Shown here: in pieces, positions 8,815-64,000 of the stretch | How positions within the stretch are numbered: the first letter of the stretch is position 1 | Layout: every line of letters starts with the position of its first letter | Made by a program: the position numbers and the translations under genes | From: Tubulanus polymorphus | Lineage: Eukaryota > Animalia > Nemertea | NCBI RefSeq assembly: GCF_964204645.1 | Contig: NC_134035.1 | Coordinates: forward strand, 13,638,686-13,702,685 | Length of the DNA stretch: 64,000 bases | Direction: 5' to 3' | The notes under the pieces: generated by a model | The model's input: only the letters and a program-made list of their open reading frames with translations | What the model was told of the DNA's origin: nothing | Databases searched by the model: none

Positions 8815-9345
8815 GGACCCAGTTCCATTGGTTTGATTTGACCCTGAATCCAGTTCCACAGTTGTGTGGGTTTAATTAGACTCTGAATCCAGTTCCACAG
8901 TTGTGTGGGTTTAATTTGACTCTGGATCCAGTTCCACAGTTGTGTGGATTTAATTTGACTCTTTGGATCCAGTTCCACAGTTGTGTGGATTTAATTTGAC
9001 TCTTTGGATCCAGTTCCACAGTTGTGTGGGTTTAATTAGACTCTGAATCCAGTTCCACAGTTGTGTGTGGGTTTAATTAGACTCTGAATCCAGTTCCACA
9101 GTTGTGTGGGTTTAATTTGACTATAGATCCAGTTCCACAGTTGTGTGGATTTAATTTGACTCTTTGGATCCAGTTCCACAGTTGTGTGGGTTTAATTAGA
9201 CTCTGAATCCAGTTCCACAGTTGTGTGGGTTTTATTTGACTCTGAATCCAGTTCCACAGTTGTGTGGGTTTAATTAGACTCTGAATCCAGTTCCACAGTT
9301 GTGTGGGTTTAATTTGACTAAGGATCCAGTTCCACAGTTGTTTGT
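8815..9345. repeat. 39-41-bp minisatellite (~13 copies) with core atccagttccacagtt
   Basis: Unit ctctgaatccagttccacagttgtgtgggtttaattaga, period 39 (8881 to 8920). Confidence 0.95.
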
Positions 9346-12377: not shown

Positions 12378-12670
12378 CTGTGGAACCGGGTCAGAAATTG
12401 TGGAAATGGATCCAGAACTGGTGGAACTGGATCCTGAACTATGGAACTGGTTCCTGTTGAAAGGTTCAGAACTTTGTAACATGTTTCAGAACTGTTGAAC
12501 TGGATCCAGAACTGTGGAACTGAATCCTGAAGTGTGGAACTAGGTTCAGAACAGTGGAACTAGGTTCAGAACTGTGGAACACTGTATCCAGAACTGTGGA
12601 ACTGAATCCTGAACAGTGGAACTAGGTTCAGAACAGTGGAACTAGGTTTTCAGGAAGGTGGAACTCAGAA
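12378..12670. repeat. ~20-bp minisatellite agaactgtggaactggatcc (same core family, opposite orientation)
   Basis: Repeated gtggaact units about every 20 bp. Confidence 0.9.
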
Positions 12671-13261
12671 TTCAGTCGGACTAACAGTGATGACAGTGTT
12701 GTAGCTGTTGTATCTATAATGAGGACAGATGTTGGTGTGTGTGTCGATACACATCCCTTCTAGTCTGTCAAACGTAATAATTAAATAATTAGCAAAAGGG
12801 ACGGAAAAATCTATGATAACTAAATTTGTGACTGTATTTTAGTAATTAACCGGCTACCTGCACTCGTGCTTGCTACTTTGATCTTTTACACAACGATGAG
12901 TCGCAATTCGATTTAGCGAGAATTGCGATGAAATTAACGCAGCTCAGTGCAACGCGACAACGTTCACAAATAAATATTGACCATCTTCCCGCCACTGTCA
13001 ATTGGTTGTCATTGTATGCACGCTGTAGAAGCCCTGAAGCTGATTGGATAAACTCACAAAAACATCGCATTAATCTATAGCTAGACGTAGATTTTAGTAA
13101 GAATCCATGTTGACTGAAAATCGGCTGCCAGTTATAAACAGACATGAATTTTAGATTTAAGACCAGTCTAATTTCAATCTGATTCTTTAACCAGTCTAAT
13201 CAACTATTATGTTGTATCATCACAAATTTAACTGGTCTTTAAGATCAGCGTAAGGTCTTTT

Positions 13262-13860
13262 TTGTTCTATAGCCAATCTAACAACTTAAGACCAGTCTAA
13301 GCTCATTTTAGTTCTATAACCAATCTAACAACTTAAGACCAGTCTAAGCTCATTTTAGTTCTAAAACCAATCTAACAACTTAAGACCAGTCTTAGCTCAT
13401 TTGGGTTCTATAACCAATCTAACAACTTAAGACCAGTCTTAGTTCATTTTAGTTCTATAACCAATCTAACAACTTAAGACCAGTCTAAGCTCATTTTAGT
13501 TCTATAACCAATCTAACAACTTAAGACCAGTCTAAGCTCATTTGGGTTCTAAAACCAATCTAACAACTTAAGACCAGTCTAAGCTCATTTTAGTTCTATA
13601 ACCAATCTAACAACTTAAGACCAGTCTAAGCTCATTTTAGTTCTATAACCAATCTAACAACTTAAGACCAGTCTAAGCTCATTTGGGTTCTAAAACCAAT
13701 CTAACAACTTAAGACCAGTCTTAGCTCATTTGGGTTCTATAACCAATCTAACAACTTAAGACCAGTCTAAGCTCATTTTGGTTCTATAACCAATCTAACA
13801 ACTTAACATCTGTCTAAGCTCATTTTGGTTCTAAAAACTAATCTAACAACTTAAGTTAAT
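13262..13860. repeat. 47-bp satellite array (~12-13 copies)
   Basis: Unit taacaacttaagaccagtctaagctcattttagttctataaccaatc, period 47 (13561 to 13608). Confidence 0.97.
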
Positions 13861-20488: not shown

Positions 20489-20777
20489 TTATTCTTGAAG
20501 ATGACTATAAGAATAAAGTCGAAACGTTGAATAAACTGCACTAGCTCAAGGAATACAGTATTCCTGAAGACGATTATTAGGATATAGTGGAAACGTTGAA
20601 TAAACTACACTAGCTCAAGGAATACAGTATTCCTGAAGACGATTATTAGGATATAGTGGAAACGTTGAATAAACTACACTAGCTCAAGGAAACATTTCAG
20701 ACACTTTTTAATCTTAGTTTGCAGGGATTTTATATTATCTTTACAACACGCACTCAGAGTGTTTCATCAATGGTTAT
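20489..20777 (+). mobile_element. Degenerate copies of the hammerhead/retrozyme-like repeat (3 units plus long-monomer tail)
   Basis: (c/t)tgaaga...gaaacgttgaataaact...ctagctcaaggaa repeated three times, then gcagggattttatattatctttacaac. The core or stem II is mutated in each copy. Confidence 0.7.
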
Positions 20778-21236: not shown

Positions 21237-21550
21237 GGGATTTTATATTATCTTTACAACACAGACTAAGAGTATTTCGTCAATGGTTATAATGAGGACA
21301 ACATCAGTATTTCTGAAGATGACTATTAGGATATAGTGGAAACGTTGAATAAACTACACTAGCTCAAGGAATACAGTTTTTCTGAAGATGACTATTAGGA
21401 TAAAGTCGAAACGTTGAATAAACTACACTAGCTGAAGGAATACAGTATTCCTGAAGATGACAATTAGGATATAGTCCAAATGTTGACTAAACTACCCTAG
21501 CTCAAGAAAACATTTCAGACTTATTTTTCTCACTCAGTTTCCAGGGATGT
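21237..21550 (+). mobile_element. Hammerhead/retrozyme-like repeat cluster (long-monomer segment plus 3 short units)
   Basis: gggattttatattatctttacaac...aatgaggacaacatcagtatt followed by ctgaagatgactattaggat(a/aa)agtcgaaacgttgaata-type units. Confidence 0.7.
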
Positions 21551-22225
21551 TAAGACATATCGCACTAATTCATTGTTGGCTGCAGCAGACTGGTCGGAAA
21601 CTGTAACAATGGTCTGTCTCATCCCACATACAGGTCGAGCGATGAAATCACCGCCGTTCATGAAACGAGCCGCGGTAAGTGAGCGTTGTAGGGAATGAAT
21701 GAGTTTTCATAGATCTGAAACACTCGTCGATTGCCCGCTTGTAAAAGATCAAATCGACTTGGTTAATGATCCAATTTGTTCCCTGCGCTATTCTTTCAAG
21801 TCTGGATGAAATAAGACGTTACGCGTCCCGTGTGTTATAGGATTGAGAGTCTTATATCGTCGACGGCACATCTGTGCTGTTATTTAATACTAGTCAGCAG
21901 ACGACTGACTGTATGAGGGGGATGTCCCCTCCGGGTCATAGGTCTATACCCCGCGCCTTCGCCGTCCTGGACATTTTCATCGTAATCAGCTTATACGATA
22001 ACCAATTCTCAAGTCATCATTTGGAGGAGTCGTCACATTAATGAAGTCATCTCTATTTTTGAGTCTCAATTTGTATTTCTAATTCAATTTACCAAAGTGT
22101 AAGTCGTCATTTTGGATAGGTCGTCAGTCCCAGTAGTTTGCACGACCTTAAGAGTCAAATATTAGCAATATGAGAATATAGCTTTAATAGTCAGCTAATT
22201 GAAATGACTCTCAAGTCTCAACGGA

Positions 22226-22365
22226 CTGTGGAACTGACTCTAGACAGTGGAACTGTGTAACTGACTTCAGACACTGTGGAACTGACTTAAGACACTGTGG
22301 AACTGACTTCATGACAGTGGAAAAGTGGAACTGACTTCGCACACTGTGGAACTGACTTCAGATAC
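22226..22365. repeat. ~20-bp minisatellite gacactgtggaactgacttc
   Basis: About 6 imperfect copies containing ctgtggaact. Confidence 0.85.
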
Positions 22366-25300
22366 TCAACAGCGGGTCCCGACTGTCATTATCCTCTAAT
22401 GATAATCAGCTCCCATGTCGTTATGGTGATATAAACAATATAAATTAATGATTTTGTCGTTTGGTTCAAAAGCGACAGTTTATCAATAACATTGAGTCTT
22501 GTATTGATATAATATATCATATACTCCTCCTTACTGGCGGGTGCAGTATAGTGTCCTTGCCGTTACTATTTGTCGGCTCTACTGTTGTTATACAGACTCA
22601 TCATCTAAACTCTTAATTAGTCTGAATGACCAGAAATTAGATTGTCACAATCTTAACTACACCCACTTTATATATCTTTACTTCCAAACTTCATCCTCTA
22701 TCTCCACCTGCCCATTTTAACTCTTCTCAAATTTTTTCTTGATCACTCTTTTCCCCCTCTGCCCTCTCCCTCTTCTCTCTTTCGCTCCTTGTCTTTTCCG
22801 CACACTCCCATATTTTATAACAATATTCCCACGGAACGCCCGCATGCGCAGTATTGTATACCGTGACGTCACGGAAACCACTTCCATACGGCGCGTTCAC
22901 GGCCCTAATTTCAATAAAATTCAAATTATCCGTTTCACGCGATAATTCTATAGCGTCTGTCATTTAGTGCCAACCCGGAAACACGTAAATTGCTAACCGG
23001 TCGACGGAACAATGCCAAACCCTGAGTGAAATATCAAAACGTCTTTAATACGACTCAAATTAGCCGTTATACCGATCATACGGGCAGGTAGGAAAAAAGG
23101 TCGCTTTGCATTTTTGCGAGAGTATAAATTTCTGAATTACGTTTGGCCGAAAGCGTGCGAACAATAAACTATAGCAGATGACATAGACCGGTTACCGGTC
23201 ACCATTGTTAGAATTCAAATTGTAACCATTGCGACCATTACCCGGAGCAGCGGATCATTTCAATTGTTTATATCCGTCGCAATAGAGAAAGACGTTGAGA
23301 AGACCAACACGTCACCCGATAAATAAATTCGGCTTCTAAATTCACAAACCGGCTTCAGAGATCCCCCGAGGCGGGTCATAACCAACCAGGCAATTGAAAC
23401 CACCTTAGCCTGTAATTATAGTTCATACCGCTACGAATTGCGAACCGTTTGACGGAGTTCCGACCTCAAACTGTGTCGGTCCGTTTGACGGGTTCCGGGC
23501 ACTACTGTGCATAGCCATTTTACTGGTTTCGGGCACTGTCGGGCCGTTTGACTGGTTACGGGTACTACTGTGTCCGAGCATTTATTGTACGCTCACAAAT
23601 TAAATTTCAAACAATTATAGTCGAACATGATGTTTTACCAACAAAATGTTGAATTATCATTATCATCCTTTAAGCTGCCCCGAAAATCGAATGGACTGCG
23701 AGCAAACTTTGAAGGTTTCTAAGAAATTTGGGGATGTGCTGCGGGTAATGTCGATTCATAATCAAACAGTATTTATCCATTCACAACTAAATCGATTTCT
23801 CAAGAGGCACTAGAACATGTTTCAGGGGCAATATCAATAGGATCTGTTAACACCTTGTTTTCCTATGTTTACATGTGGATATCAATTCATAAAAACATTT
23901 GTTTATTATGGTTATTTTTCAAACGAATTAATTCTTGATTTAGAGATAGTATTATATATTTTTTTCGATATTGAATCCTACCTTCCTCGTTGTGACAGGA
24001 CAATCGATTTGGGAGACCTGAATCGAGATATAAAACGAACCAAATATCAGTTTTAAATATAACCGCAAAGCAGTCAGTTAGACCCAAAATGGCGGATCCT
24101 GAGTATACCGCTAGTAACGTCGTTCGGGTGGTACTCAGAAACAGATTTCCTAAATATAATTTCTAGTATTTCTCCTTTTACGCGACTCCGCAATTTTATG
24201 GTCTTCAGATATATTTTGGTTTGACTTCAATCACAAAACTAGCAGCAAGTTAGAGAGCTTGCTTCGACAGGTTTTCTGGGACGCCCTTGACAGCCCTCAT
24301 TATTGATGGCCCTCAGTAAATTTCGAGGATCACTTATTGGCTTAACAAATATATCCTTTATGCTTCAATTATCGGTTAACCTTAAAAATACTATTTGTCT
24401 TTTTCACCGGGGAAATATGATGAACAAATCTAAACTTAAGCAGTCCTATATTCAGCAGTACAGACTCATACCACCCCTAACCCTTATAACACATTCATCT
24501 CGCGTAGTTCAATAATAACTAGTAGGTCTAACCTATCTCTGGGGTATTAGACATTCAGACGAATTCTGACATTTTTTTGACAAACGAGATCCGATATATG
24601 ATCTCCTTGTATTAACTACTGCGATTCGACCTAATCTCTATTGAATATTAAATCGTTCTCGATCTGGATCGGGATGTCCGGTTTGACCAGTAGATGACCA
24701 CCACGGTGTAAAACACTATCGGGGTTTTATACTGATTGACCACTGTCCGTGCTCTGTACGATCGTCTTGGTCAGTTTCTAATCGTTTTAACCTTGAAATA
24801 GGAAATTGTGTCTCTTTTCAATTTCATCGACTGATTGTTTTTGATTTGATTTAAATTTGAAATCGAAATCTTGGTCAGTTTTTCAGCATTTCTTCATAGT
24901 CCAGAAACCTGCGCAAAGTTAGGAGGACACTTTGATGATATGGTCTCAGATTTTAGATTGTCACCTCGCACCTGCGATGGTATGTTAAACGAGTACTAAT
25001 TTGAGCCGAATTTTGTAAAATGGCTCATCTAAACTTGATATTAATTTGTGTATGAAAATGCGTGGATTGCACATATTTAAATAAAAACAGCGGTTAGTGG
25101 TAAATATTCTCGATTTTCTGCAAGGTTAGCCTGTGGACGCAAGAACGAATTTTCAATTTTTTGAGTCCATGGTTGTTTTAGACCAAACAGTACAGTGTAA
25201 TGATTTGCATAGCTGTACATAAGCAGCCGTAGCCAGCCCTCTATACCCAACACCAGCACCAACAGCTACATATATCTCTCTCTTTCTCTGTACCTCGCAG

Positions 25301-27939
25301 TTTGCAATGATACGATTAATGAAAATCAATGCTACGGTCACTCATGCGTTAACCGTCAAACACTGCGCAGCTCTACACGCCTGCCATCACCACCACCACC
25401 AATGTCAAGGTCGGTTAAACTTCGCGTTTCTCTTGACAACACGTTTGCGTTGATCGAATTCACTTTTGATCTTATTGAGGAAAAAGTTGCCGCGGCGCAG
25501 TCATAGGTTAGGTTGTATAAGACCGGTTTGAGCTTATTTTGGGTCTTAGACAATCTATTAGACTAAGACTAGACTAAGGACCCGTCCCAGAGACTATGTT
25601 AGACGACTTTTCATCCTATGGATAAAATCACGGTCCAGTTCAACAGTCATGGCTTTCATCTAAGACCAGTCTAAGACCATCTTATTTCTATAGTCATTCT
25701 AACAATCTGGACCAATCTTAAGATAAAAACCTCTTATGGACGACTGTACAACAATGGACCCTGAATTTACCTTCGTGTCTGGAAAACTTCCATATACAAT
25801 TTTACATCTTTAAGACTTGTATATGATTATGTATTCGACGCTTGGTGGCGTCGCTGTCGCCGACCTGTTTAGAATATGCTAAATATGCAAATGAGGCGAC
25901 GGCGAAGTGCGCGATCACGTGAAAAGGTGTAAGAACAAGTTTTTAATTGTCGCACGGTAAAATGACTCGACTCGTCTCAGCGATCCTCGGGTTGGCGCCG
26001 ATCTCAAGTGTTTTCTTTTTAGCCTTTTGGAAGCCGGTGAATTGCCGACATTTTTAGGACTCACGCGTTGGGCATTCAAACGGACAATACGAATACGCGT
26101 TATATATGTGACGAATTGAATAAAACCACTTGAGATATAGACCCACAGTCGCCAGACGATTATAAAAGCACATAGTATCAAACATCGGTCGTAAACAAAA
26201 CCCGTTTTAGCGAACACAATACCGAGGTATTAGACTCATTTAACGTCGCGTTTGTAAAACGATTATTGAAACTGTTGAAATAGATTTAAATGAATTGAGA
26301 GTAGGAGTTGTTATCTATGAGACCGGTTATCATAACGTTACCATGTATAGTACAGGTATATAGGACCGCGACGACGGTGACAACATTCCAGACAATTTGT
26401 CCACGAGGAGAGAACAAATTTACCTCGCTCACTATAAACCCGTCGTTAACGCATTGTGTTTGTGCGTGTTTGAATTATTATTATTTTGATAAAAGAGCAA
26501 TTCGTCCGTTCTCGCGTTAAACCCTGTATATCACTGTTATTATCTATCGCCGATAAATCATAATTAGTCGCCTAATTAAACTATATCGATTGTGTTTGAT
26601 ATATCGCGTTGAATATATCATTTTAAAGTGCTCGCTTTACCTTGAATCGGCGGCGTGAATTATTTATAAGAGTTCTCTTTAGGAATAACCCATATTTATG
26701 TTTTTATTAGGTGACAATATTTCACTATATTCGCGACCTCGATACTTTCGCATCAACTTCTACGGATTGAAAATCCGAACTCTGAAACCTGGGTAGAACT
26801 GGAACCATGTGATTTTTCTACACGTTGAGATTTTATTGAGATTTTACTATTGACGGAGAATTGCTGTTCCTTTGATTGTGGAAGCAATAATTATTCTTTT
26901 GTTTGTTCAGAAATTCTCTAAAACGCCCTCTAAACCTTATAGCAAAATTCAACGAGAAAGATGAAGTCCGAAAAGTTTCCGTTAATCCAATCATTCATTT
27001 ATTTTGATGCCTAACTAATAAACTGCATTAGCTCGAGTTAAAATTTTGGAACCTTTTATTCTTATACGGACTCACAAAAAAAGATTCACAAAGATTTCGA
27101 CTTCATTGTTTTTTTTTTGTTGATATCAAATTTAGAAATTCAATATTGAGAAATCGTAGCATTTCCTACAAAAAGATGGATGACTATTTTCTGACGGGTT
27201 ACAAGGTGATTTCAGAGGCCAACAGCTAATAATTACTGGCAGACGACACAATACGATCAGAATAAGACCTGTGTTTTTATCAGTATCGGCGGCAGCGGCG
27301 GCGGCGGGAGTCAAACACGGAGAAGATCCAATAAAACAGGACAGCTCTATGAGACCTGTGTCTACAAACGAATTAAAACCTATTTGTCACCGGCCGCGCC
27401 GTTTGACAGGTATAAGGCCTATTATTATATTATCAATTTGAATGTTATGACATTCGTGGAGAAAATTGTTTTTCACACGAAACTCGTGTGTTCCAGGGGA
27501 TGGATATCTACCAGTTGTCTGTCGGTGTTTAATCGTCTTGTCGTCGGTTTCAGCTTGGTTAGAAATCACGGAAATAGCGTTCGCGAAATACAAGAGCGAT
27601 TTGTGTCCATAATTAGATTACATAAAGCCACAATTTCATGAAGAAAAAAATAAGAGAGCTTTTACCCGATTCTACGAGACATTTCCGAGCCTAAGTTGAA
27701 AATTGCTCAACTGACTTTACTGCGGATCTGTGTCCAGGTAATCGGTCCGTTTAGCCGAGAAATCACAAAATGGTCATCGATATATCTTAAAATTATGTTA
27801 CTTCTGGTTTTCTGGTCATTCCACCTGATGATGGCTGTTAGTCAACAGCCGAAATGTTGTGGTTTCGTTCTAATAAATTATCTCATATAAAATTTGAATT
27901 GTGGGATTTCTTCATTAAACTTAAAATTATGGTATTAAG

Positions 27940-28290
27940 TTGTTGAATTGATTATAGAACTAAAATGAGCTTAGACTGGTCTTAAGTTGTTAGATTGGTT
28001 ATAGAAGCAAAATGAGTTTAGACTGGTCTTAAGTTGTTAGATTGGTTATAGAAGCAAAATGAGCTTAGACTGGTCTTAAGTTGTTAGATTGGTTATAGAA
28101 CTAAAATGAGCTAAGACTGGTCTCAAGTTGTTAGATTGGTTATAGAACTAAAATTAGCTTAGACTGGTCTTAAGTTGTTAGATTGGTTATAGAACCAAAA
28201 TGAGCTTAGACTGGTCTTAAGTTGTTAGATTGGTTATAGAACCGAAATGAGCTTAGACTGGTCTTAACTTGTTAGAGTGGCTATCGTACA
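27940..28290. repeat. 47-bp satellite array (~7 copies), reverse complement of 13262-13860
   Basis: Unit taaaatgagcttagactggtcttaagttgttagattggttatagaac. Confidence 0.96.
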
Positions 28291-29984
28291 GACTAAGCTA
28301 TAACTATGGAACTGGTCCCCTGAATTTAGAAATGTCACTGAATGTTGCAGTCCTATAAATTATCATTATCGCATTGGTCAAAGTTTGAGTAATTGAGAAA
28401 TTGATGGCGTTAAAGCGTTAATAATGAGCTACATAATGAACTAATCAGTGTTATGTATATTGCTGACGCTGCCGCTGCTGCTGCTGCTGGTGCGGTTTCT
28501 ATTTTCTCGTCTGCTGAGCTGTGATTAGTTATATCGCACCCGTTAAGCGGTAAATTACGTGTTAAAACGATGACTGTTTAAACTCATTTATTTGACAGAT
28601 GAATGTTACACCTGAACACCTGTATATAGGTCTCTCTAGACACTCACAACACACGTGCACTTAATAAACTCTACATATTCAGATTATTAAAAAACCCTAG
28701 AAAGATTTCTAAGACACCGAAATGTCTTTTAATTTTTGATTTCAAATTCAATTTTCATCTTCGTAATCTTAGTTTTTTATTAAGTAGGTTTTTAATCGTA
28801 TTATCTTTTTTCCAATTCTGAGGTACAGGCAACTACTACACAGTTCCTCCTTGACCCTGTTCCACGGTTCACAGGATCCAGTTCCACGGTTCACAGGATC
28901 CAGTTCCACAGTTCATAGTATCCAGTTCCACAGTTCTGGAACCAATTCTACAGTTTTGAACCCACTTCTACGGTTACCGAACTCAGTTCCACCGTATCAA
29001 TTAGTATCTGTTTCTGTTCGAAAAAAGATATTGAATAATGCAGAATCGTAAATTCATTATTTTCGCGACCTAGATAATGCTGATTATTCAGGTTCTGTCA
29101 ATGGACATCAGTCAGGATCGCGTGATGAAAATGACCGGACCCCCGCGCGGGTTAAAGAGAGATACGACGATTGAAATCGTTTAAATGCGGTACTCAACGC
29201 GACCCGGCGGGGGGTATACAGCGGTATAATTAAACGGAAGCCCGTCAGCGTTCGCGCAGTACCGCGGTTTAACTACGACCTAGCAACCCTCCTACCCTCC
29301 CCGCTGACAGGTCCCGCTGTGACGGTAAAAAGATGTTTTCACGAAAAAACTTAATCTTCGCACTCACTTCAGTCGCGCTATTTACCGATATACGTCAGAC
29401 TAATTAGACACAGACAATGTTTGCATTACCCCCCAGAGTTAAACAGTTGATACTTCTCTTCCCCCTCTCCCTCCCCTCTCCCTCCCCTCACTCCCCTCAC
29501 CCTCCCCTCCATCCCCCATTTCAGAGTCTCACGAAGAAGTTGCATTTTGTAACAAAATAATCTATGCGTTTGTTTTGTAGTTGACTTTTGGAAAACAACA
29601 GTACAATCGAGATCATCATTCCCAGGCCTGCACATAACGCCCCCTACCGGACGGATTTAGATCTAGTCTGTCTCTTAACGTATTTCAAAATAACAAATTG
29701 TTGAAAATCCTCAGATAATTCAGGTTATTGAATATGTATTAGGTGTTTTGTGAAAGTGTGTTTTGGCTGTATTTATCTTTGCTTGCCGCATTTCATGGAC
29801 TTTTCTAAATTCCGATAAACTCCAAAACCGATATTCTTAAATTATGACACCTAAATGTGTAGAAAAACTAATTAAAACAAAACACTTAAAAATAACTAAA
29901 AAAAGCATCTAAAATTATCACGAATTTCTAGGACTACTATACAAATGCGCATGCGTAAGAGGAGAAATCAAGATGGCGTCTTAC

Positions 29985-35529: not shown

Positions 35530-35740
35530 ACTCAGTTCCACAGAGGACTCAGTTCCAGTTCTGGACCCAGTTCCAGTTCTGGATTGAGTTCCTCAGTTCA
35601 GAGTTCCACAGTTCTGGATCCAGTTTCACAGTTCTGGACCCAGTTTCACAGTTCTGGACTCAGTTCCACAGTTCTGGACCCGGTTCCGCAGTTCTGGACC
35701 CAGTTCCACCTCTGTACCCACGGCCACAGTTCCGGACCAC
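35530..35740. repeat. ~20-bp minisatellite cagttccacagttctggacc
   Basis: About 9 imperfect copies. Related arrays at 28850-28995, 55405-55530, 61600-61720 and 4755-4870. Confidence 0.88.
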
Positions 35741-42922: not shown

Positions 42923-43585
42923 TTTTATTCTAATAGTCATCTTCAGGAATACTGTATTCCTTGAGCTAGTGTAGTTTATTCAACGTTTCGACTATATCCT
43001 AATAGTCATCTTCAGGAATACTGTATTCCTTGAGCTAGTGTAGTTTATTCAACGTTTCCACTATATCCAAATAGTCATCTTCAGGAATACTGTATTCCTT
43101 GAGCTAGTGTAGTTTATTCAACGTTTCGACTATATCCTAATAGTCATCTTCAGGAATACTGTATTCCTTGAGCTAGTGTAGTTTATTCAACGTTTTGACT
43201 ATATCCTAATAATCATTCTCAGGAATACTGTATTCCTTGAGCTAGTGTAGTTTATTCAACGTTTCGACTATATCCTAATAGTCATCTTCAGGAATACTGT
43301 ATTCCTTGAGCTAGTGTAGTTTATTCAACGTTTCGACTTTGTCCTAATAGTCATCTTCAGGAATACTGTATTCCTCGAGCTAGTGTAGTTTATTCAACGT
43401 TTCGACTTTATCCTAATAGTCATCTTCAGGAATACTGTATTCCTTGAGCTAGTGTAGTTTATTCAACGTTTCGACTATATCCTAATAGTCATCTTCAGGA
43501 ATACTGTATTCCTTCAGCTAGTGTAGTTTATTCAACGTTACGAATATACCTAATCCTAATATCCTAAATAGCTCATCTTCAGGAA
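42923..43585 (-). ncRNA. Tandem array (~9.5 x 69 nt) of minimal type I hammerhead ribozyme motifs, retrozyme/Penelope-like
   Basis: Minus-strand unit reads UAUUC-CUGAAGA-U-GACUAU(UAGGAU)AUAGUC-GAAA-CGUU-GAAUA. It has the core boxes, a 6-bp stem II, a 5-bp stem I and a palindromic ACGU stem III. Period 69 (ttgagc at 42961, 43030, 43099). Confidence 0.8.
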
Positions 43586-46500
43586 CGTATAAATATAAAA
43601 AAAGATGAAAATATGGTCTGAATGATATCTATTTATGTGAGTTGAGTAGGAACCAATAAAATCTTGTACACTCATATTCAATAAAAGAGATGTCTCAGCT
43701 ATTCGCGCGCTAAATGCCCTCATATTTTTATCACTGCGGTGTACAGAGACATGGACGAATCATACTTGTGCACTTCAAATTAACCGATGACAAAAAAACT
43801 GCGCGATTAATCGAAAGAAAAACAGTTTGTTCGATTGTGCGCGAATAGCGTGGCATATACACGCGATTTAGTCCGCATTGTTTGTCGTCTATTGCGAGTA
43901 ATTCGAGCGGAATTTTCAATTTTACGTTTTTACAAACTCGTCGACTATGCGAGTTAGCGACAAAGCTCGACATTATTTTATAAGATTCCTGTTCCGATAG
44001 TGTGAGTGCATGTGTTTTTTAGCTCGGCGTATATCACCGTATAATGGCTTCAACAACAGGTATAATGCATAAGACTTTAATTGGGGGTATACCTAACAAT
44101 GCGCCGGGGATATAGGACAGCTTTCAATCAGTAAAACCGGCATGCGCGTCAAAAGAAGCCGAGAATGAGAAGTAATGTGTTACGGATTCCGTCGATGCTC
44201 ATTTATTTATCAGCGAACACGTATAAAAACTACACATGTATTGAGACAAGTATTCAGGCCCTCGCCCGCCCGCAGGGGACTCCTTTTCTTTAGATTTACC
44301 GTCAGTGGATCGTGTTTAAATTTGTGACATTTTTCGCTCAATAGCTCGACAAGTTGGTCCTTGATATTTATATATGGAAAAAAGTATATAAACGGATTGT
44401 AGATCGGGAATCGTATTGACTGTGAAACTCGCTACTTAAGTGTTGGGACCAGATTATCCAAATTCTTGAATTGGAATGCATTTTAGGACTCAAAAATAGA
44501 GATGACTTCAGTAATGTGACGACTTATCCAAATGATGACTTAGACTTAGTAAATCGAATTAGAAATACACAAATAATTGGGCTCAATATTATAGAGAAAA
44601 CTTTGATAATCTGACGACTTATTCAAACGATGACTTAACGCCAGTTTGACCGCGGAATTCTTCCAAAAACGTTTATGACGTCACAAACTACTGTTAAATT
44701 GTGTTCACATTTTTTTTTCTAACAACAAAATTACCCGTGAACATTTAATGAAATCGAGGGCCACGATAGAGAGCGATCTAATGAGTAGGTAAACTGTGAA
44801 ATAGCCGAGCTTCCTACGCGTTAAACGTATGTTTAATTCCGAGTTGGATATTATAGAAATGAGTAGGGGGTTCACTTGTGTTCGGGGACAATGCAATAAA
44901 ACGTAGACCGCCGTTTGAATACCGCGTCTGCTTGATAATAGTTCAGCGGTACCGCGGGCGCTTTCTGGGGGACGAAACGGTCCTTTCTTAAGAACTCGAA
45001 TTTTGATTGGTCGCCGCGCTCATTACCGATACCATCCTCTCTCCGAATCGCGGGCATCGATTTCAAAGGGATTTCGGGCGGCTTATAAATTGGCCCGGGG
45101 ATACTGACCGTACTAATACCGCCACCTAGCGATAAAATCGAACATCGAGTCGCTTTATGAAAGTAAGATCTTTATCGTACGATATCTCAGATATCTCAAA
45201 ACAGATCGATATATCAACCATATAGCAACAACACGTAGAAGAAGATTATAAAATATAAAACGATGGGTTTTTAGTTTCTAAGGAAGAGTTAGATCACTAT
45301 AATGTGTCTCTTAGGAGGTGCTAGCCACCCCCGGATACCGGCATAGGCCGACATTTTTAAGGCTATTCCTTACGTGGGCCAAACTAAACAGAAATAATCA
45401 TCTTCACAATTCTTTGCCTGAAAGAACTTTGAAAGTTTAATTGACGAAATAATTTAGAGCGAAGATACACAACCCGGTAAAAAGTTTGACTCCAGACCCG
45501 TTTCAGAGCGGTAAAACCTTGGAGTGAAACTTAAACTGAGATATTGCCGGATCGGGTCCTGGCTGATAATTATATTCTATAATCAAATCTGTTTCACAGC
45601 GGTTGCAGGTGCAATTATGACGTCATCGTCTGGTAATAAACAAACCCTAATGAACTGTGAACGATCAGCGGGGCCCCTACCCGGCGCCGTTACCTCTGTG
45701 TCCATACCCTACCCGAGCGAGTGTCCAGATGCTAACAAGTTTAACTGAGGTTTATTTATTTTGCTAAATTAGACCTCGGACTCTTCATCATCGTCATCAA
45801 CCGTCTCAAATTTTGTGCCTGGTTTTTAAAATTATTTAACAAGATCCGCCATTTTCAGTTGTTTATTTGTAACCGGCGCCATTGTTGCGCAATAAAGTAT
45901 CATCCGTGCCTCGTGACCAAATATAGCGATTTGAAGAGTTTCACGCCGAATTTCCCCATCTGCGCCGGGAGTTTCAATAACAGTGAAATTTTGTATTATA
46001 CAAATTGCTCGATTGGATACCAGACAGGTTTGTATGTCCACTTGTGGCAAAGAGCTCTCGAAAATCGTGCCGACAGCGTTTCGACATAGTCACCAAATAA
46101 AGACTCGATCTGTCGCTCTTTGTCAGGTCTAGAGTTTAAGGGTATTTTCGATTATCTATCTCATACGACTCGCGGCCCTTTTCCCCTTTTAATTGTAATT
46201 GATCCAATTTGTCCGCGTGTCCGCTACGCAAATAGATACAACACTATAACAACCCTTGACTTCTAAGCGGTTATCTGAGCTAATGGTTGAACATTCTAAA
46301 TCTCGAGAAGTTTTGGAACTTTTTGAATTGATTTGTGAGTTTACCAGCGGTAGGTTTTTCAAAACTGAAATACTACTTCTTTAAATTTAAATCGAGAGGG
46401 GAGAAAGAGAGAGAGATATGGAGAGCCTACTAGCTAGCGTCTAAAGCGATTTGCGGCCTTATTTTTCAAAATTGCAATATCCTTTCATTTAGGCCAATAG

Positions 46501-49080: not shown

Positions 49081-50734
49081 GACGCGAACGCTCGCCGAAT
49101 GGATGCTGGCTGCATTGTTACGTCCAGCATCCGAGAGAGCGACAAGATGACGATGATACCGAGATGATACTCTACAAGGATTTATCTTTAAAACGATCCT
49201 GGTTAGAAATCTCAATCGGTAACTCAAGAATATTTAGTCTTAGGGACAAAGTTACTTCATAAAAGAATATAAGACTGAAACAAACTACAAACGCATTTAG
49301 AAAAACGCATTTTGAAAATGAAATAAGTTTGTGTCCCAAGAATTAATCTCAAAAGTTACTAAGAAACGATATCTATCGTCTGGGGTGTGAACAGGTTTTT
49401 TGTCGGGATCAAAATGATTCTTAGAATCTGTTACGCATCAAATTCGCCTACGTTAAACCGGACTGAAATTCTGATTCTTGTAAGTAAAATAAATAAAACC
49501 GTATTTAACAACAATCAAGAGAATGGAAAACGGTAACGGATAACAAACTGCGCGTGTAGTGATGGAAAACCGATTTTGTTGTTTTGCAAAATTAGAAATA
49601 TTCCTTATCGAACATTGATGAAACTCCCCGAGTCCGTGTCCTACCGACAATATGCCATATTACACCCAACACTCATAAATAAAATCCGAAAAGTCTCCTC
49701 GAAACTATTTGAGTTTATTCTCGACGTTTCGACTATTATATCTTAATAGTCATCTCTCTTCAACAAAGAATGATGATCAATATTGTATCGTCAGTTAGTA
49801 GTGATCCTAGTCGTGTGTTAACAATGAGGAAAACGTTGACGAAACACAGTTAAAAATGAGTCCCTGTTGTAACCACAATACACCTTAAAATCCCAAACTC
49901 AGGCAGAAAATGAATATTCCTGATGATGTTCATTAATTAACATGAAATCTTTCTGGACTCACTTTTCTTTTTGAGTGTAACATTCATTTCTTTTTGTAAT
50001 AAACATTTCTTGTTGTTTTAACGACCCAAATAATGAGACTTCCCATCCAATGATAGAACATCCCCGTATAGGGAAAAGATTCCGAACATTCTCTCTCTCA
50101 CTCATACCCCTAATAATCTGTATAATCTGTTTCGGATCTACTGGAGATACTTTCTTCATCTTCTCCTAAACCGCATTTCAAATTAGTTACCGATTCCAGC
50201 GTCAGGCGTCGCTACAATCTAATAAAAACGGTAGATATCTCGTAAGTCGAGAAAGTCTCCTCGCGGTGGTGTTAAAGAAATTCATTGTGCCCGAAATTAA
50301 GGTCACGCCGCCGCCGACCCGATCTCTTAGCAGACGACAAAACGAGTAATGAATGATGAGTTAATCAGGTATCTACAATAGTCGAATCGTCACGACATTC
50401 GTGAATATCGGAAATTGCAAACACCCCTCTTTCAGTACGTCGCACGTCACTGCAAACACCCCCCTCAATATAGACACCTCGGTGTCCGCTAAATGACTCT
50501 CTAATTCTTAATGAAGTGTTTAATTCACCTATTTCTCTCGTCTCTGCTACCACTGAATCTACTTAAGGTTCCTCTTAATTTTTCTGATAAGTAACGAGAC
50601 GAGTAGTACTGTACTTTTCTGGTAAGTGTGGTCGCTCATTTAGCTGTGGTGACCTGTCAATGATTCAGTAAAATCATTTTGCACAAAAGAAACAAAAAGT
50701 ATCGTAAGCCCCAGCGCTGAGCCCGTAAGGTATA

Positions 50735-50960
50735 ATCCTAACCCTATCTCCACCATAACCTTAACCCTAGCTGGACCGTAACCCTAACCCTAGCAGGACT
50801 CGATCCAGCGACCTACACCTCGCCAGCCGAGCATTCTAACCACTAGACCATAGACATGTAGCGATTGTAGGGGTTGGGAAGATTATCTGGTCAGTGTGGC
50901 GACCTGTTAGTTGTGGTGACCAGTCAGGTGTGGTAACTGGTGACCAGTCAGGTGTGGTGG
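50735..50960 (-). mobile_element. Second copy of the tRNA-related, TTAGGG-tailed element
   Basis: Minus strand: TGGTCTAGTGG ... GGATCGAGTCC TGCTAGGGTTAGGGTTA plus further degenerate TAGGGTT units and the same ggtgaccagtcag subrepeats. Confidence 0.6.
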
Positions 50961-54200: not shown

Positions 54201-57200
54201 CAAGATGTGTCGACACGTTTGCTTTGTTATGGTGAAGGTGGAGCCTGAACTGCATCGTCAGAGCTCTGTGTGTGACTTTGAACGAGGAGCAGAGATGGAG
54301 GCGAGATCAGAGAGAGCGAGGAATCAAGAGCGAGGAATATCGAGAGCAAGGAATCACCGTAGGAATCACCGGGTACACACACACACACACACATGTACCT
54401 CGTTACGCTGTCTAAAACAGACTCAAAAAACCAAGTTATTTATCGACGAATTCTATTGATCTTTAACTCCCCCTGTAAGCACCGTCGCCAGGCCTGAGCC
54501 CCTTCGCAGTTATCAGCTGCTCGGTAGAACGGTTTCTGCAGCCCGTAAATATCGATACCGTGTTAATGCTTGTCTCGTCGTACATTGTCGAACTCAATTT
54601 CGGCTACGTTCGTTTGTTTTTCAGTTTTTTTGAGAGGAGGAGGAGGAGAGAAAGAGAGAGAGAGGAGAGGGGACAGAGAGAGAGGAAGAGAGAGAAGGAG
54701 AGAGAGAGGAGAGAGGGTAGGGGAGAGAGAGGAGAGAAGGAGGAGAGGAGAGAGGAGAGATGGACGGGGAGGGCAGGGAAAGGAGGGGAGAGAGAGAGAG
54801 AGAGAGAGGAGAGAGGGACGAGGGAGAGAGAGATATAGATGCGCCTAATGAAAGGAGAGTGAAGCGAAGGAGAGAGTGAGAGTTGCTGCTGTGACTAGAG
54901 AGAGAGAGAGAGAGAGACAGCATTTAGTTGGTAGTGATATAGGAGAACTAACGTTGATTACACCCTGACTGGACTATCTCAGTAAAAAACACACCCAGTC
55001 ATCATAAACGATAACTCTGATGAACAAAGAATTTTCTCTTCGGAACAACATTCATGATTCATTCATTAGTAAAACAACTAGCAGATCATTCTCTCTACAT
55101 CTCTCGGCAGACGAGACCTCCATAACCGATCGCTCCGGTATAACAACAATCCCGTAGAACTTCATTGTCGAAATACGGTAAAATCACACACGATACAGAA
55201 ATAAGAAAATGAGGTATTGAAAATTTCCTTGAGCTTAAAGTTAAATTTCAACATTTCGACTTCCTAAAGTTATCTTCGGAAATACTAATTTTTAAACATG
55301 TTTTACCCATTTCAACACGTACAGAGTGCATCATCAACATTACGTTGAAATAATATTCACGATTTTCTAATCAACTAATTATAGCACATTAATTTATGTC
55401 AAAACTGTGAAACTGGATCCTGGGTTCAGAGTTAACACTAATTCATGCGTGGAACTGGATCCTGAGTTCAGAGTAAACTCTAACTCACAACTGTGGAACT
55501 GGATCCTGAGTTCACAGTTCACTCTGAATCTGATTCTGAACATTTTCAGATTCATAGATTTCACTAGAGAAATCTTTGTGACGAAATCTACAATTCCTAG
55601 AAACGTTAAATTCATGAATACAATTTTCTTAATTCTTTTATTATCGGAATAATTATCGGAATATTTATCGGAATATTTTCTGGTGCAAAGAAATTCATTA
55701 TTCCCGATGCTCATTAAGACATAAAGGGTTAACATATGGAGAGATAAAGAGAGTGAGAGAAGGAGAGAGTTAGTTTACGGTTGACTGAATTCTAGATCAG
55801 TTAGAGAAAGAAAATAAGATAACAGCTAGCTGTCAGAGAGTAACAGTGAGAATAGTCGGGTGTAAATGATTTAATCTCTACAGGATTAACAACTTCATTC
55901 ACTACCAGTATAACTATACGATAAGACGTTTATAACCCCTGCGGTCCCGGGTTCAAATCTAATTATTGCACCTATCAACACTATGATTATTGGAATGGAG
56001 ACGTTTGAAGTAGCTATGTAGAGGGAAGTCAAATGTTCACGTCAGTTAACCGCGTTCACTTGATGTCACAGCGCATCATACTGGCCGTCAAGGAGCAAGT
56101 GAAAAATCATAGTTTGACGGCCAGTATGAAGGCAAGTTGACGCATGTGAACCATGTGATACTTGTGACGTCAGTCAGTTTATAGTCAGGTCGTAAACGTG
56201 ATTTTTATCACGTCAGAATGGCCGGCACCATGTCGACTGGGTTCGGGTTTAATCGGAGTCCATCGAGCAGTCTGACGTCACTTGCACGACCCTGACCTCT
56301 ACAGCGCGGTTGCGAAGTTGGAGTTTTAGAATCAAGTCCGCGCGTCAAGCCTTACGGAATTCTTCAAGAGACTCGAGGAATCGCACTGCAGGAACCGCAT
56401 ACCATAGAGCACTTACAGTTCTATGGTCGATTGAACATTATATCGCCCAGGAATGATAGTATACGACATTCCTCAAGGGACTCGAGGAACTGGCAGACGA
56501 CAGTACGGAAAGTTAAAGTTCTATGGTCGATTGAACATTAGAACGACCAGGAATGAAAGTTATTCTGGTGACAACATGGGTAAACTTTAGTTTGTAGGAT
56601 CCGACTAACTCGCTCACTGAAGCTCGCCATAGCTGATCGTATTGAATTGATATTTGAGTGTTTTTTGTTCGCTGTTGATCTGATTGGGATTCACCTGCGA
56701 TACAGTCGACTAGATCCACCCCCTACAACTCCATCCTAGCGCTCTAAAACACGACACGATTTATCTATTTAATGAAATAGTGATGTTTTAGTTTCTTCGT
56801 TCATTCTTTTTTTTTTGTACCGATAAATATTTATCCATTTATGCTACAATAATACGATAAAACATCTAAAACATCATCATCAGCAGCAGCAGTAGCGGCA
56901 GTATCGGAGTTGTAGCTACAGCAGCTGCCAGGGCTTTCAACTTGTTTTTTCCCTCCTCCGAATACGACAGATCGACGTATGAGTACACCCCGACACCGCC
57001 GCCATTAACGAAATAGATTTTCCATAATATTCATATTTTTCATGTTTTACGCCGGGATGAATCGCGTTTCATTAAAGGATTCTCGGGCGCGAGTTGTATT
57101 TTCCGCTTGGTCGGATTAAAATCTATTCGTTTGGCTGCAGATGTTCCGTAGTTTCGTATTCAATAACTCAAATGTGTGACTGGTTACCGCGCGGTGTGAC

Positions 57201-61445: not shown

Positions 61446-63479
61446 AAAAAAAATCATCTAACCATGCACTGCTCCGTGATCTATCATACGTGGAAACTGG
61501 ATCTGCTGTTTATCTACACATTACTTATGTTTTTAAATCTTGATAAAGTTTAGATTTGACTCCGAGTTAAAACATTGAAAATGAACTAACTTAAACACGT
61601 TAACTCTAACTCACAACTGTGGAACTGGATCCTGAGTTCACAGTTAACTCTAACTCACAACTGTGGAACTGGATCCTGAGTTCACAGTTAACTCTAACTC
61701 ACAACTGTGGAACTAGATCCCGATTACAAATTTTATGGCGATTTATAAAAGTGATCCGGCCGTTAAGGAGAAACAAGGTATCAATTTTTTCTAGCTTTAG
61801 TTTTACCCGATAAAGAGTACATGTAATTAAAAGGCGATATTTTCTAAACGTACCCAGCTCGTGCGCAAAGGTAAATAGTCTACCGGTAATTAATCTGTGT
61901 CAAAATATTATTAAAAACCCATCAATAATTTCATCTTCCGATAAAACAAATTGTCATCATCAACAAAAACGGGTCTCTTTTTTTAATCAATTTCAAAATC
62001 ACGCTAAATTAGTTTCATGAACAAACACCGTGATTTCTGATTTCTGTTAATATTTATATACCGACTTTTAATAATCGAAATTAAAATCTAAAAATGTGAG
62101 TAAAAGCTCGATAATTTCTTCAGAGAATTTCAAACGTTCATAGAAAAATATCGAATTTCAAATATTGACTTTTTTCTGACAGAATTAACTGAAAAACGTT
62201 TGACCTTCGCCGCGCAAATAGAGACGTATTCGCGCGGGACAGATTCGAATTGTCGGCTACATTGACGGATTGTATTGTGCGCTATTTTGACGGATCGCTC
62301 CGCGAGGAGTTGACCGAATTGAGTCGACAGTTTGTTCCGTTGTTGTTCCGCGCATCCAGAAAATTACCACGACTACAAAACCTTTCTAGTTCGTTGTTGT
62401 TGTAACTGTCGTGTTTGTTGTTGACAATGAAAACGGTTTACGGTTCGGACAGGTAATTTTGAATTTCGCGTCAGGAGTGGATTATAGTGTTCCCATGGGG
62501 AGGAGGGGTACGGAGAGAGAGGAAGGGAGGGTAAGGGGAGAGGGGAGGGGGTGTATCAGTTCTCGACGCGCAAATTCGAAATATGAATTCAAAGTTCAAA
62601 TCATCGCAAACATCAGCCATATTGATGATGTCACAATTAGCACGGAAGTCATGAGTTTCAGTCAAGCATGTCTTTCACTACCCGGTCAGTGTGGCCGAAT
62701 TGTTAGTACTGTCGCCTCACAACCTGTGCATCCCGAGGTCGAATCCTCTCCGACGATTATTTATTTTTTCTTTTTTTTTAGAAAAATACAGAATTATCCC
62801 TGTTTAATCTGTTATTTTTGCGCAAGTTGTTCATCAATTAAGATCTTATTCAAGGGAAATGGAAACATTTGGTTGTTAAAGTTGGAACTGTGGAACTGGA
62901 TCCAGAGTAAATTAGCCTCATAAAATAGTGGAACTGATTTCGCAGACTACAGCAACCCTGAGAGACTGCTATTACTATCATCTCGGGAACAATCTTAGAA
63001 CGAGTCGCGAGACAAAAATGTAAAGAAAATGATTCTTTGTCGATGGAGTGCCATCACACAAGCATTGAAGACAGTTTTGTCGATTTATCCCGCTACCGTT
63101 ACTGCTGCTGCTGCTGCTGCTACTGCTGCTACTGCTGCTGTAGCTGGTACCGAGTTTCCCCGATCAAATATTTATGAGCTCCGCAGAAGAGACTTTATCT
63201 GTAGCGATAATAACGCTAGAATGAACACTACCGAATAATCCGGTTTGACAATATGGATGTTTCATGTATAACGCTCTAATATAGGGCCGACTCTCTCTCA
63301 CTCGCTCTCTCTTTCTCTCTTTCTTTCTTTCTCTCTCTCTCTTCTTTTCGCCGGTATACTGAAATAATGATTGCTATCTTTCTGTAACCATAAATGTCTT
63401 AAACTACTCCAGTGTAACTGCCATTATTTCTTTGAATAATTCCCGTGGTTACTGCGCAGTCCTGTATAGTTGTAATTCC

Positions 63480-64000
63480 TATACCAGGAATAAACCAACG
63501 ACCCTCGTTCTATAAACCATGGATGAAACATGATCTGAGTCCGTGTTGTAAAAACGATATAAAATCCCTGCACACTAAGAATGGAAAGGCCCAAAATGTT
63601 TCTCTTTGCTAATAGTTTATCATTCAACGTTTCAACTTTATCCTAATAGTCATCTTCAGGAATACTGATGTTGTCCTCATTATAACCATTGATGAAACAC
63701 TGTGAGTCCGAGTTGTAAAGATAATATAAAATCCCTGCACACAGCTGAGAAAAAAAAGAGTTTGAAATGTTTCCTTGAGCTAGTGTAGTTTATTTGACTT
63801 TATCCTAATAATGATTATCATCTTCAGGAATACTGTATTCCTTGAGCTAGTGTAGTTTATTCAACGTTTCGACTTTATCCTAATAGTCATCTTCAGGAAT
63901 ACTGTATTCCTTGAGCTAGTGTAGTTTATTCAACGTTTCGACTTTATCCTAATAGTCATCTTCAGGAATACTGTATTCCTTGAGCTAGTGTAGTTTATTC
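63480..64000 (-). mobile_element. Hammerhead-containing retrozyme-like array with ~168-nt and 69-nt monomers (truncated by window end)
   Basis: Same hammerhead unit as 42923-43585. atccctgcac recurs at 63564 and 63731, and tcttcagg ends at 63660 and 63828 (~168-nt period), followed by 69-nt units. Confidence 0.75.

Follow-up and report, generated by a model that had tools for sequence, protein, structure and literature searches.

Four short tandem arrays in the window, that is, in the whole 64,000-nt stretch of DNA analyzed here, belong to one repeat family whose units of 167 and 69 nt are each organized around a predicted minimal hammerhead ribozyme. We consider it likely that the repeat derives from a Penelope-like element (PLE) and is itself non-autonomous, that the 167-nt unit gave rise to the 69-nt unit once, and that the arrays spread in trans and were then remodeled by local exchange.

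Arrays and Relics in the Window

The arrays lie at 20489–20777 and 21237–21550 on the plus strand and at 42926–43585 and 63506–64000 on the minus strand. An earlier note on this DNA had listed four clusters in both orientations, which is confirmed; its last array is also real but starts at ~63506 instead of at 63480. Tandem Repeats Finder places 69-nt arrays at 20490–20691 (2.9 copies), 21305–21506 (2.9 copies), 42926–43554 (9.1 copies), and 63818–64000 (2.7 copies). The long unit maps to 63655–63822, 20668–20777, and 21237–21317, with a diverged copy at 63515–63575. The proposal of a single hammerhead family in two monomer sizes is borne out. Of the sizes proposed, 69 nt stands, and ~168 nt is replaced by 167 nt, the genomic consensus of the long unit. 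The individual features are collected in Table 1.

Table 1. Hammerhead-bearing units, relics, and related repeats in the window.
Feature	Position	Strand	Remarks
Three hammerheads at 69-nt spacing, then long-type tail	20489–20777	+	Hammerheads at 20489–20535, 20558–20604, 20627–20673
Part of a long spacer (starting at unit position 100), then three 69-nt units and a long-type tail (to unit position 108)	21237–21550	+	
Exclusively 69-nt units, 9.1 copies, with degenerate units at the ends	42926–43585	-	Tandem Repeats Finder, 95% matches
Diverged long unit	63506–63667	-	Good hammerhead at 63620–63665, covariance model E=1.2e-11
Single long unit, 168 nt	63655–63822	-	Hammerhead broken (GAAACGTTG deleted), long spacer intact
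69-nt units	63818–64000	-	2.7 copies, Tandem Repeats Finder, 100% matches
Old relic of a related diverged family, ~222-nt unit	49600–49900	-	Degenerate hammerhead at 49712–49755
Solo degenerate long-type unit (relic)	55150–55330	-	Core CUGA changed to CCGA, long spacer recognizable, from covariance-model search
Family D minimal hammerhead, of another Penelope family and outside the 69/167 family	27821–27862	+	Covariance model E=2.4e-13
GTGGAACTGGATCCAGAAC-type repeats	8830–9341, 12378–12665, 22225–22366, 28859–28975, 35545–35738, 55402–55525, 61599–61720		

The array at the window end continues for ~1.6 further units, or 138 nt, beyond position 64000. Each of its 69-nt units has an intact hammerhead, with helix II slightly weakened by an AAAGTC variant, and the covariance model matches 63856–63902 and 63925–63971 at E=2e-15 each. 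On the broken long unit next to them, the model reaches only E=0.11, at 63799–63833. The diverged long unit is 78% identical to positions 1–94 of the family-A PLE, and its 3′ tail stops at unit position ~151, a Penelope-type 3′ terminus.

In the array at 20489–20777, the tail stops at unit position 153, and the ~20 nt upstream of the first unit resemble a PLE 3′UTR. A long-type tail closes three of the four window arrays, at 20777 (unit position 153), at 21550 (108), and at ~63506 (151). Most units of the array at 42926–43585 have a complete hammerhead, and ten covariance-model matches fall within 42975–43504, with E values from 9e-16 to 1.5e-10; its degenerate end units give weak matches at 42924–42952 (E=0.0085) and 43527–43588 (E=0.0055).

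A relic that had been noticed near 49720–49760 is real as well. Its degenerate hammerhead, 84% identical to the PLE hammerhead (covariance model E=0.022), sits between two copies of a conserved Penelope 5′UTR motif (complement TTGAYGAAAC...GAGTCC).

The Two Units and Their Relationship

The 69- and 167-nt units have their first 67 nt in common, up to CAAGGAA. The short unit then continues with TA, whereas the long unit has 100 nt (ACATTTC...GGACAACAT). The junction of the short unit, GGAA-TA-CAG, is not what a clean excision from the long one would leave. Of the 69 nt, 46 are ribozyme and 23 are not.

The most fitting interpretation of the 69-nt unit is that it derives by deletion from the 167-nt unit, and the internal deletion suspected in the earlier note is thereby supported. 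The long unit has diagnostic differences from the PLE, such as CACTAGCTCAAGGAA in place of C-TAT-CTCAAAGTTT, and the short unit shares them. Since the short unit shares the long unit's differences from the PLE and carries no PLE-homologous sequence beyond it, the size order 2856 to 167 to 69 nt is the parsimonious one. The short-type junction has a single origin, from which it spread.

The long unit is tandem in its own right. Arrays with a period of 167 nt, made of the long unit alone, exist elsewhere in the genome, one of which (L026) has 10.1 copies with 98% matches, and up to 11 long units are found in a row. In addition, the two sizes are often interleaved, for example as 167, 69, 167, 69, 167 or as 69, 167, 167, 167, 69, 167. 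The wording "retrozyme turning into satellite" overstates the case and is not supported by these observations, as both sizes occur in the same short, dispersed arrays.

The Link to Autonomous Penelope-like Elements

Many GIY-YIG matches in the genome fall within open frames of ~800–833 aa, and apparently intact PLE ORFs of 802–833 aa are present. At two loci (L044 and L048), the hammerhead of family A, identical to that of the repeat, is present in two copies spaced by 2856 nt, in the same orientation as an ORF of 802 aa that matches RVT_1 (E=6e-10) and GIY-YIG (E=1.5e-5). One copy of the ribozyme precedes the ORF by ~95 nt and the other follows its stop codon at a distance of ~310 nt, so that each pseudo-LTR has one.

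Positions 1–97 of the 167-nt consensus, which run from the ribozyme into the 5′UTR, are 84% identical to the PLE. Collinear homology continues via GGGATT and CAACACGGA to the ATG, with 29 of 38 aligned positions identical, a score for the ATG-proximal part that is reached by 8 of 1000 shuffles. The window holds no PLE coding sequence; the ribozyme and 5′UTR part alone matches. Homology from the ribozyme to the ATG, combined with this lack of coding sequence, indicates that the long unit corresponds to a PLE pseudo-LTR without the ORF and the 3′UTR. As far as its sequence goes, the 167-nt unit is essentially a PLE pseudo-LTR, extending from the 5′ strand of helix I via the 5′UTR to just before the ATG, plus a linker of ~10 nt.

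The Penelope connection proposed in the earlier note is therefore upheld, both by the identical ribozyme in each terminal repeat of tandem elements with reverse transcriptase and GIY-YIG domains and by the ribozyme-to-ATG homology of the long unit. Among the PLEs found, even the closest shares just 84% identity with the repeat, and we call it parent-like rather than the parent subfamily.

The Hammerhead Motif

Read by hand on the sense strand, the motif has the layout UAUUC-CUGAAGA-U-GACUAU-loop-AUAGUC-GAAA-CG-UU^-GAAUA, in which the caret marks the putative cleavage site, after UU and before the GAAUA that is the 3′ strand of helix I. UAUUC and GAAUA form helix I (5 bp), GACUAU and AUAGUC form helix II (6 bp, with a 6-nt loop), CUGAAGA and GAAA belong to the core, and a single unpaired U lies 5′ of helix II. 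In place of helix III is the palindrome ACGU, formed by A15.1-C-G-U16.1. The motif is a predicted Penelope-type minimal type-I hammerhead (min-HHR). The loop 1–loop 2 tertiary contacts of a canonical hammerhead were not found in it; the motif is of the minimal PLE kind.

With a hammerhead descriptor, 12 matches were obtained in the window, versus 0.1 after shuffling. Eight hammerhead examples served to build a covariance model, which gave 18 window matches with E<1e-8, plus weak ones on relics. Rfam returned no hammerhead, either at the gathering score or at E<=10, for either of the loci searched, probably because its hammerhead models expect a helix III, which is absent from min-HHRs by definition. 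The only Rfam matches were chance snoRNA-like ones arising from UGAUGA/CUGA boxes.

In ViennaRNA, the preferred fold of the 69-nt unit (-25.1 kcal/mol) contains an 8-bp stem in which GUAUUCCU pairs with the junction sequence AGGAAUAC. The hammerhead folds are at -15.2 kcal/mol for two single hammerheads and at -12.3 kcal/mol for the double hammerhead. The competing stem is predicted to cover part of the core, namely C3 and U4.

On the complementary strand of the long spacer, a candidate for a further ribozyme (TTGAYGAAAC-N5-13-GAGTCC, also present in the relic at 49600–49900) was rejected. It has no helix II and is the complement of a 5′UTR motif (CAACACGGA...GTGTTT) that is conserved between PLE families A and B.

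Conservation between Families and within Copies

Five families of the motif are recognized in the genome, as follows: A, the repeat and its PLE; B, a second PLE; C, at locus L047; D, at 27821–27862 in the window; and E, at locus L042. The palindromic ACGU is found in families A and B, and the non-palindromic ACAU and AUGU in families C and D. In family B, helix I is CGC/GCG and helix II is GGCUAA/UUAGCC.

The stems were found to covary, a point on which the earlier note had asked for analysis. In the alignment of families A to E, 93% of cells are paired, versus 28–42% when the partners are slid by 1–3 columns, and 8 of 11 stem pairs have changed on both sides; families C, D, and E had been chosen with a descriptor that already requires pairing, whereas B was found by its position and by BLAST in a PLE. 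Family B alone shows four compensatory changes relative to A. Positions T9, G10, A11, G13, and A14, GAAA, and TT are invariant across the five families.

Within the copies of the repeat, a different picture is seen. Minor-allele frequencies, taken from 52 long and 24 short units, are 0.018–0.029 in the core and 0.007–0.008 in the spacer. A C11.1-to-G change breaks the closing pair of helix II in 38% of long units, and C11.1 is changed in 21% of short units (5 of 24; four G and one T). The broken C11.1 variant is fixed across whole arrays. As conservation of the core does not exceed that of the spacer, and as C11.1 is so often changed, most copies are not under selection to cut.

Thus, a core no better conserved than the spacer, the outcome that the earlier note had said would speak against its reading, is what is seen among copies; it does not hold between families, where the core is invariant and the stems covary. 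The weaker conservation of the core within genomic copies is the look of dead mobile-element copies and is uninformative about master copies. The between-family comparison shows constraint on the hammerhead motif in the elements themselves.

Copy Number and Distribution

With at most 2 mismatches allowed, the short-type junction occurs 1,550 times genome-wide and the long-type junction 198 times; reversed controls gave 0 matches. The short form is thus ~8 times more numerous than the long form, and the expansion of the shortened form that had been proposed is borne out. In total there are ~1,600–2,000 units, roughly 0.05% of the 268-Mb assembly, for which "high-copy", the term used in the earlier note, is too strong. 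Pattern counts were 401 for starts of the long spacer, 198 for long junctions, and 1,596 for the shared spacer; as their stringencies differ, the totals do not add up.

Among the matches listed, the overwhelming majority lie within ~2 Mb of contig ends, and 99 of the first 100 lie within ~1.8 Mb. The window itself is 274–338 kb from the end of its contig. Sampled arrays are 0.3–1.9 kb long and come from many contigs. Overall, very many short arrays of 3–21 units, with unrelated flanks, are dispersed over all large contigs.

Within one array (L003), a 167-nt unit adjoins 69-nt units. In another (L030, G000:C8:3711901-3715037), 167- and 69-nt units alternate, and the long units have variants in common that do not occur in the interleaved short units. 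The resulting 236-nt (167+69) higher-order repeat points to local amplification at the DNA level. The higher-order repeat and the array-wide variants show local homogenization, in arrays that are short (0.3–1.9 kb in those sampled).

Array Ends and Mode of Spread

In families A and B, the ends of PLE copies fall either immediately upstream of the ATG or ~20 nt after the conserved GTGGGATT. The termini of 21 arrays, a small sample biased towards long-unit arrays, were compared with these. Eight of the 21 arrays end at unit positions 128–157, beside the equivalent of the ATG (p=0.02, for a window of positions chosen post hoc), and 10 of 21 start at unit positions 1–17, the 5′ edge of the ribozyme. 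Three arrays, and also one family-B PLE, have at their 5′ end a partial copy that is inverted, head to head.

At L047:1430-1475 (G000:C1, ~15.219 Mb), a pair of family-B PLE copies is arranged head to head, and both start exactly at CAGTACGCC, the 5′ edge of the hammerhead. The start shared by these copies and many of the satellite arrays suggests that the template RNA may have a defined 5′ end.

The proposed course of events is as follows. The 69-nt unit would have arisen once from the 167-nt unit, by loss of 100 nt of the 5′UTR part. Without a helix III of its own, a unit would be able to cut only when paired with a neighbor, and a tandem array would allow such pairing. Copying of arrays into new sites is probably done in trans by the reverse transcriptase and the GIY-YIG nuclease of the PLE, and at these sites the arrays would afterwards grow or shrink by unequal exchange. 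We infer mobilization in trans from the termini shared with PLEs, the inverted 5′ partial copies, and the published hallmarks of PLE insertion (PMC8557442); ribozyme activity and any formation of circular RNA are likewise putative. Against this course of events, none of the 42 termini of the 21 arrays lies within 5 nt of the hammerhead cleavage site, so that the ends give no sign of a ribozyme-processed RNA template, and no consistent target-site duplications were seen at 15 array borders.

A plainer history would have a PLE fragment captured once and then spread and homogenized by DNA-level processes only, i.e., unequal crossing-over, gene conversion, and segmental duplication between subtelomeres, with the ribozyme as an inert passenger. 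Such a satellite should form a few long blocks, whereas very many short arrays of 3–21 units, with unrelated flanks and on all large contigs, are observed. Nor would it be expected that array ends cluster where PLE copies end and array starts at the edge of the ribozyme, or that inverted head-to-head partial copies, typical of PLE insertion, occur; apparently intact PLE ORFs (802–833 aa) are also at hand in the genome. On the side of DNA-level spread are a core no better conserved than the spacer, a helix II-breaking variant homogenized within arrays, strong enrichment near contig ends, the 236-nt higher-order repeat in L030, and the lack of consistent target-site duplications at the 15 borders. 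We regard this history as unlikely.

At the other extreme, the 69-nt unit might be a working, ultra-reduced retrozyme. Dimeric hammerheads would cut the transcript, the 69-nt RNAs would be ligated into circles, and template switching by the PLE reverse transcriptase would rebuild mixed arrays. Mixed 69/167 arrays would then always finish on a long-type tail, which would supply the PLE 3′ end. Self-processed RNAs, if formed, are expected to have their 5′ ends at GAAUAAAC. If this were true, the 69-nt circles would be among the smallest ribozyme-bearing circular RNAs known. We regard this possibility, too, as unlikely.

It is very improbable that the arrays are PLE debris, that is, partial tandems and solo pseudo-LTRs made independently at each site, with no separate non-autonomous lineage. 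PLEs do normally insert as 5′-truncated partial tandems (PMC8557442), and the 3′UTR-like ~20 nt preceding the first unit of the array at 20489 would be in keeping with such an origin. Independent events, however, would hardly produce the same two deletion junctions 1,550 and 198 times with at most 2 mismatches, or a repeat with common diagnostic differences from PLE-A at 84% identity, and the window is without any PLE coding sequence.

That the CUGANGA...GAAA resemblance is chance in an AT-rich repeat is barely credible, since Rfam's failure to find a hammerhead at the gathering threshold or at E<=10 probably reflects the missing helix III, and since the descriptor gives 12 matches versus 0.1 in shuffles, the core is retained in five families whose two stems have undergone compensatory substitutions, and the motif occupies its published position in PLE pseudo-LTRs.

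Other Tandem Repeats in the Window

The family-D hammerhead at 27821–27862, on the plus strand, is followed by the conserved 5′UTR motif ATTGTGGGATTTC and then directly by a 47-nt array at 27930–28284 (7.6 copies). Possibly, the segment 27821–28284 is a second element of PLE origin whose body is a satellite. The same 47-nt satellite is found in opposite orientation at 13239–13855 (13 copies), with no hammerhead beside it.

Tandem repeats of ~20–42 nt, based on the motif GTGGAACTGGATCCAGAAC or its complement, occupy at least seven sites in the window, in both orientations (Table 1). At 50732–50799, a 23-nt repeat containing AACCCTAACCCTA is an interstitial relic of the TTAGGG-type telomere repeat, which fits the subtelomeric position of the window.

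Comparison with Known Hammerhead Repeats

Published min-HHRs have a long helix II (6–8 bp), a short helix I (3–5 bp), and an unpaired base 5′ of helix II; their helix III is absent or palindromic, they act as dimers, and they cut poorly in vitro (PMC4209133). The motif described here is like the min-HHRs of PLE pseudo-LTRs (Cervera & de la Peña 2014, PMC4209133) in its type-I topology, conserved core, helix lengths, and unpaired base, in the 2-nt palindromic insertion that gives ACGU, and in the presence of one motif per PLE terminal repeat. The published min-HHRs (PMC4209133) are mostly single genomic motifs, whereas here the motif is also amplified alone, in 69- and 167-nt tandem units.

Non-LTR retrozymes were described as short tandem type-I hammerhead repeats that give circular RNAs, with units of 150–450 bp (Cervera & de la Peña 2020, PMC7229834). 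That definition relies on canonical hammerheads with loop–loop contacts and on demonstrated circular RNAs of at least 150 nt, and the same paper separates the minimal PLE motifs from canonical retrozyme hammerheads (PMC7229834). By that definition, the present repeat differs, as its hammerhead is of the minimal kind and it is known from DNA alone.

More recently, Li, Clavereau & Pollet (2026, bioRxiv 10.64898/2026.07.22.740005) included minimal hammerheads, with family consensus lengths of 51–972 bp, and required that two or more units in succession carry complete type-I hammerheads. Such consecutive units are found in the window at 43389–43435 and 43458–43504 and at 63856–63902 and 63925–63971, each pair 69 nt apart. 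The preprint reports enrichment of multimers at chromosome ends and homology to PLE pseudo-LTRs in Xenopus, to which, by its own statement, its examination of that homology was limited (10.64898/2026.07.22.740005). The likeness to the present repeat extends to short, dispersed tandem units, dimers to multimers, a type-I hammerhead per unit, chromosome-end enrichment of multimers, and PLE pseudo-LTR homology, and 69 bp is within the reported range of lengths. Judged by these sequence features, the repeat fits the non-LTR retrozyme class of the 2026 preprint. The retrozyme–PLE link has been shown in vertebrates (Xenopus), whereas here a parent-like PLE and two steps of reduction (2856 to 167 to 69) are found in one genome.

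Craig et al. (2021) gave inverted 5′ partial copies, 5′ truncation, and partial tandems as hallmarks of PLE insertion, and they described derivatives without an ORF whose 3′ ends are shared with autonomous PLEs and whose insertions are head to tail (PMC8557442). The repeat resembles such derivatives, e.g., MRC1 of Chlamydomonas (PMC8557442), in the lack of an ORF, the head-to-tail multimers, the 3′ similarity to an autonomous PLE, the 5′ truncation, and the inverted 5′ partial copies. The MRC1-type derivatives, however, belong to the Chlamys clade, in which hammerheads are mostly missing, and are much longer, whereas the unit here is reduced almost to the ribozyme.

Tandem type-I hammerhead units are also shared with the classical satellites, i.e., newt satellite 2, Schistosoma SM-alpha, and cave-cricket pDo500, whose hammerheads have a weak helix III and work best as dimers (PMC7229834, PMC4209133). 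Those satellites have units of ~330–500 bp, canonical hammerheads, and transcripts that have been shown, in contrast to the 69- and 167-bp units with a minimal hammerhead, known from DNA, that are described here.

Significance

The repeat is a clear example of a kind of element that has already been described, and knowledge of such elements is unchanged by it. What is particular here is that the reduction can be seen in two steps, that the two sizes are interleaved, and that a parent-like PLE, apparently intact, exists in the same genome. That is, three successive sizes of one lineage are found in one genome: an apparently intact PLE with a 2856-nt period, a 167-nt ORF-less form, and a 69-nt derivative that is little more than a ribozyme, the short forms being interleaved in hundreds of small subtelomeric arrays. 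The repeat extends to another genome the link between PLEs and retrozymes, which has so far been argued mainly for vertebrates. With its 69-nt unit and with natural C11.1G variants as controls, it would also be a compact test system for cutting by dimeric min-HHRs in vivo. It is a clean natural example of the end of a retrotransposon seeding a satellite.
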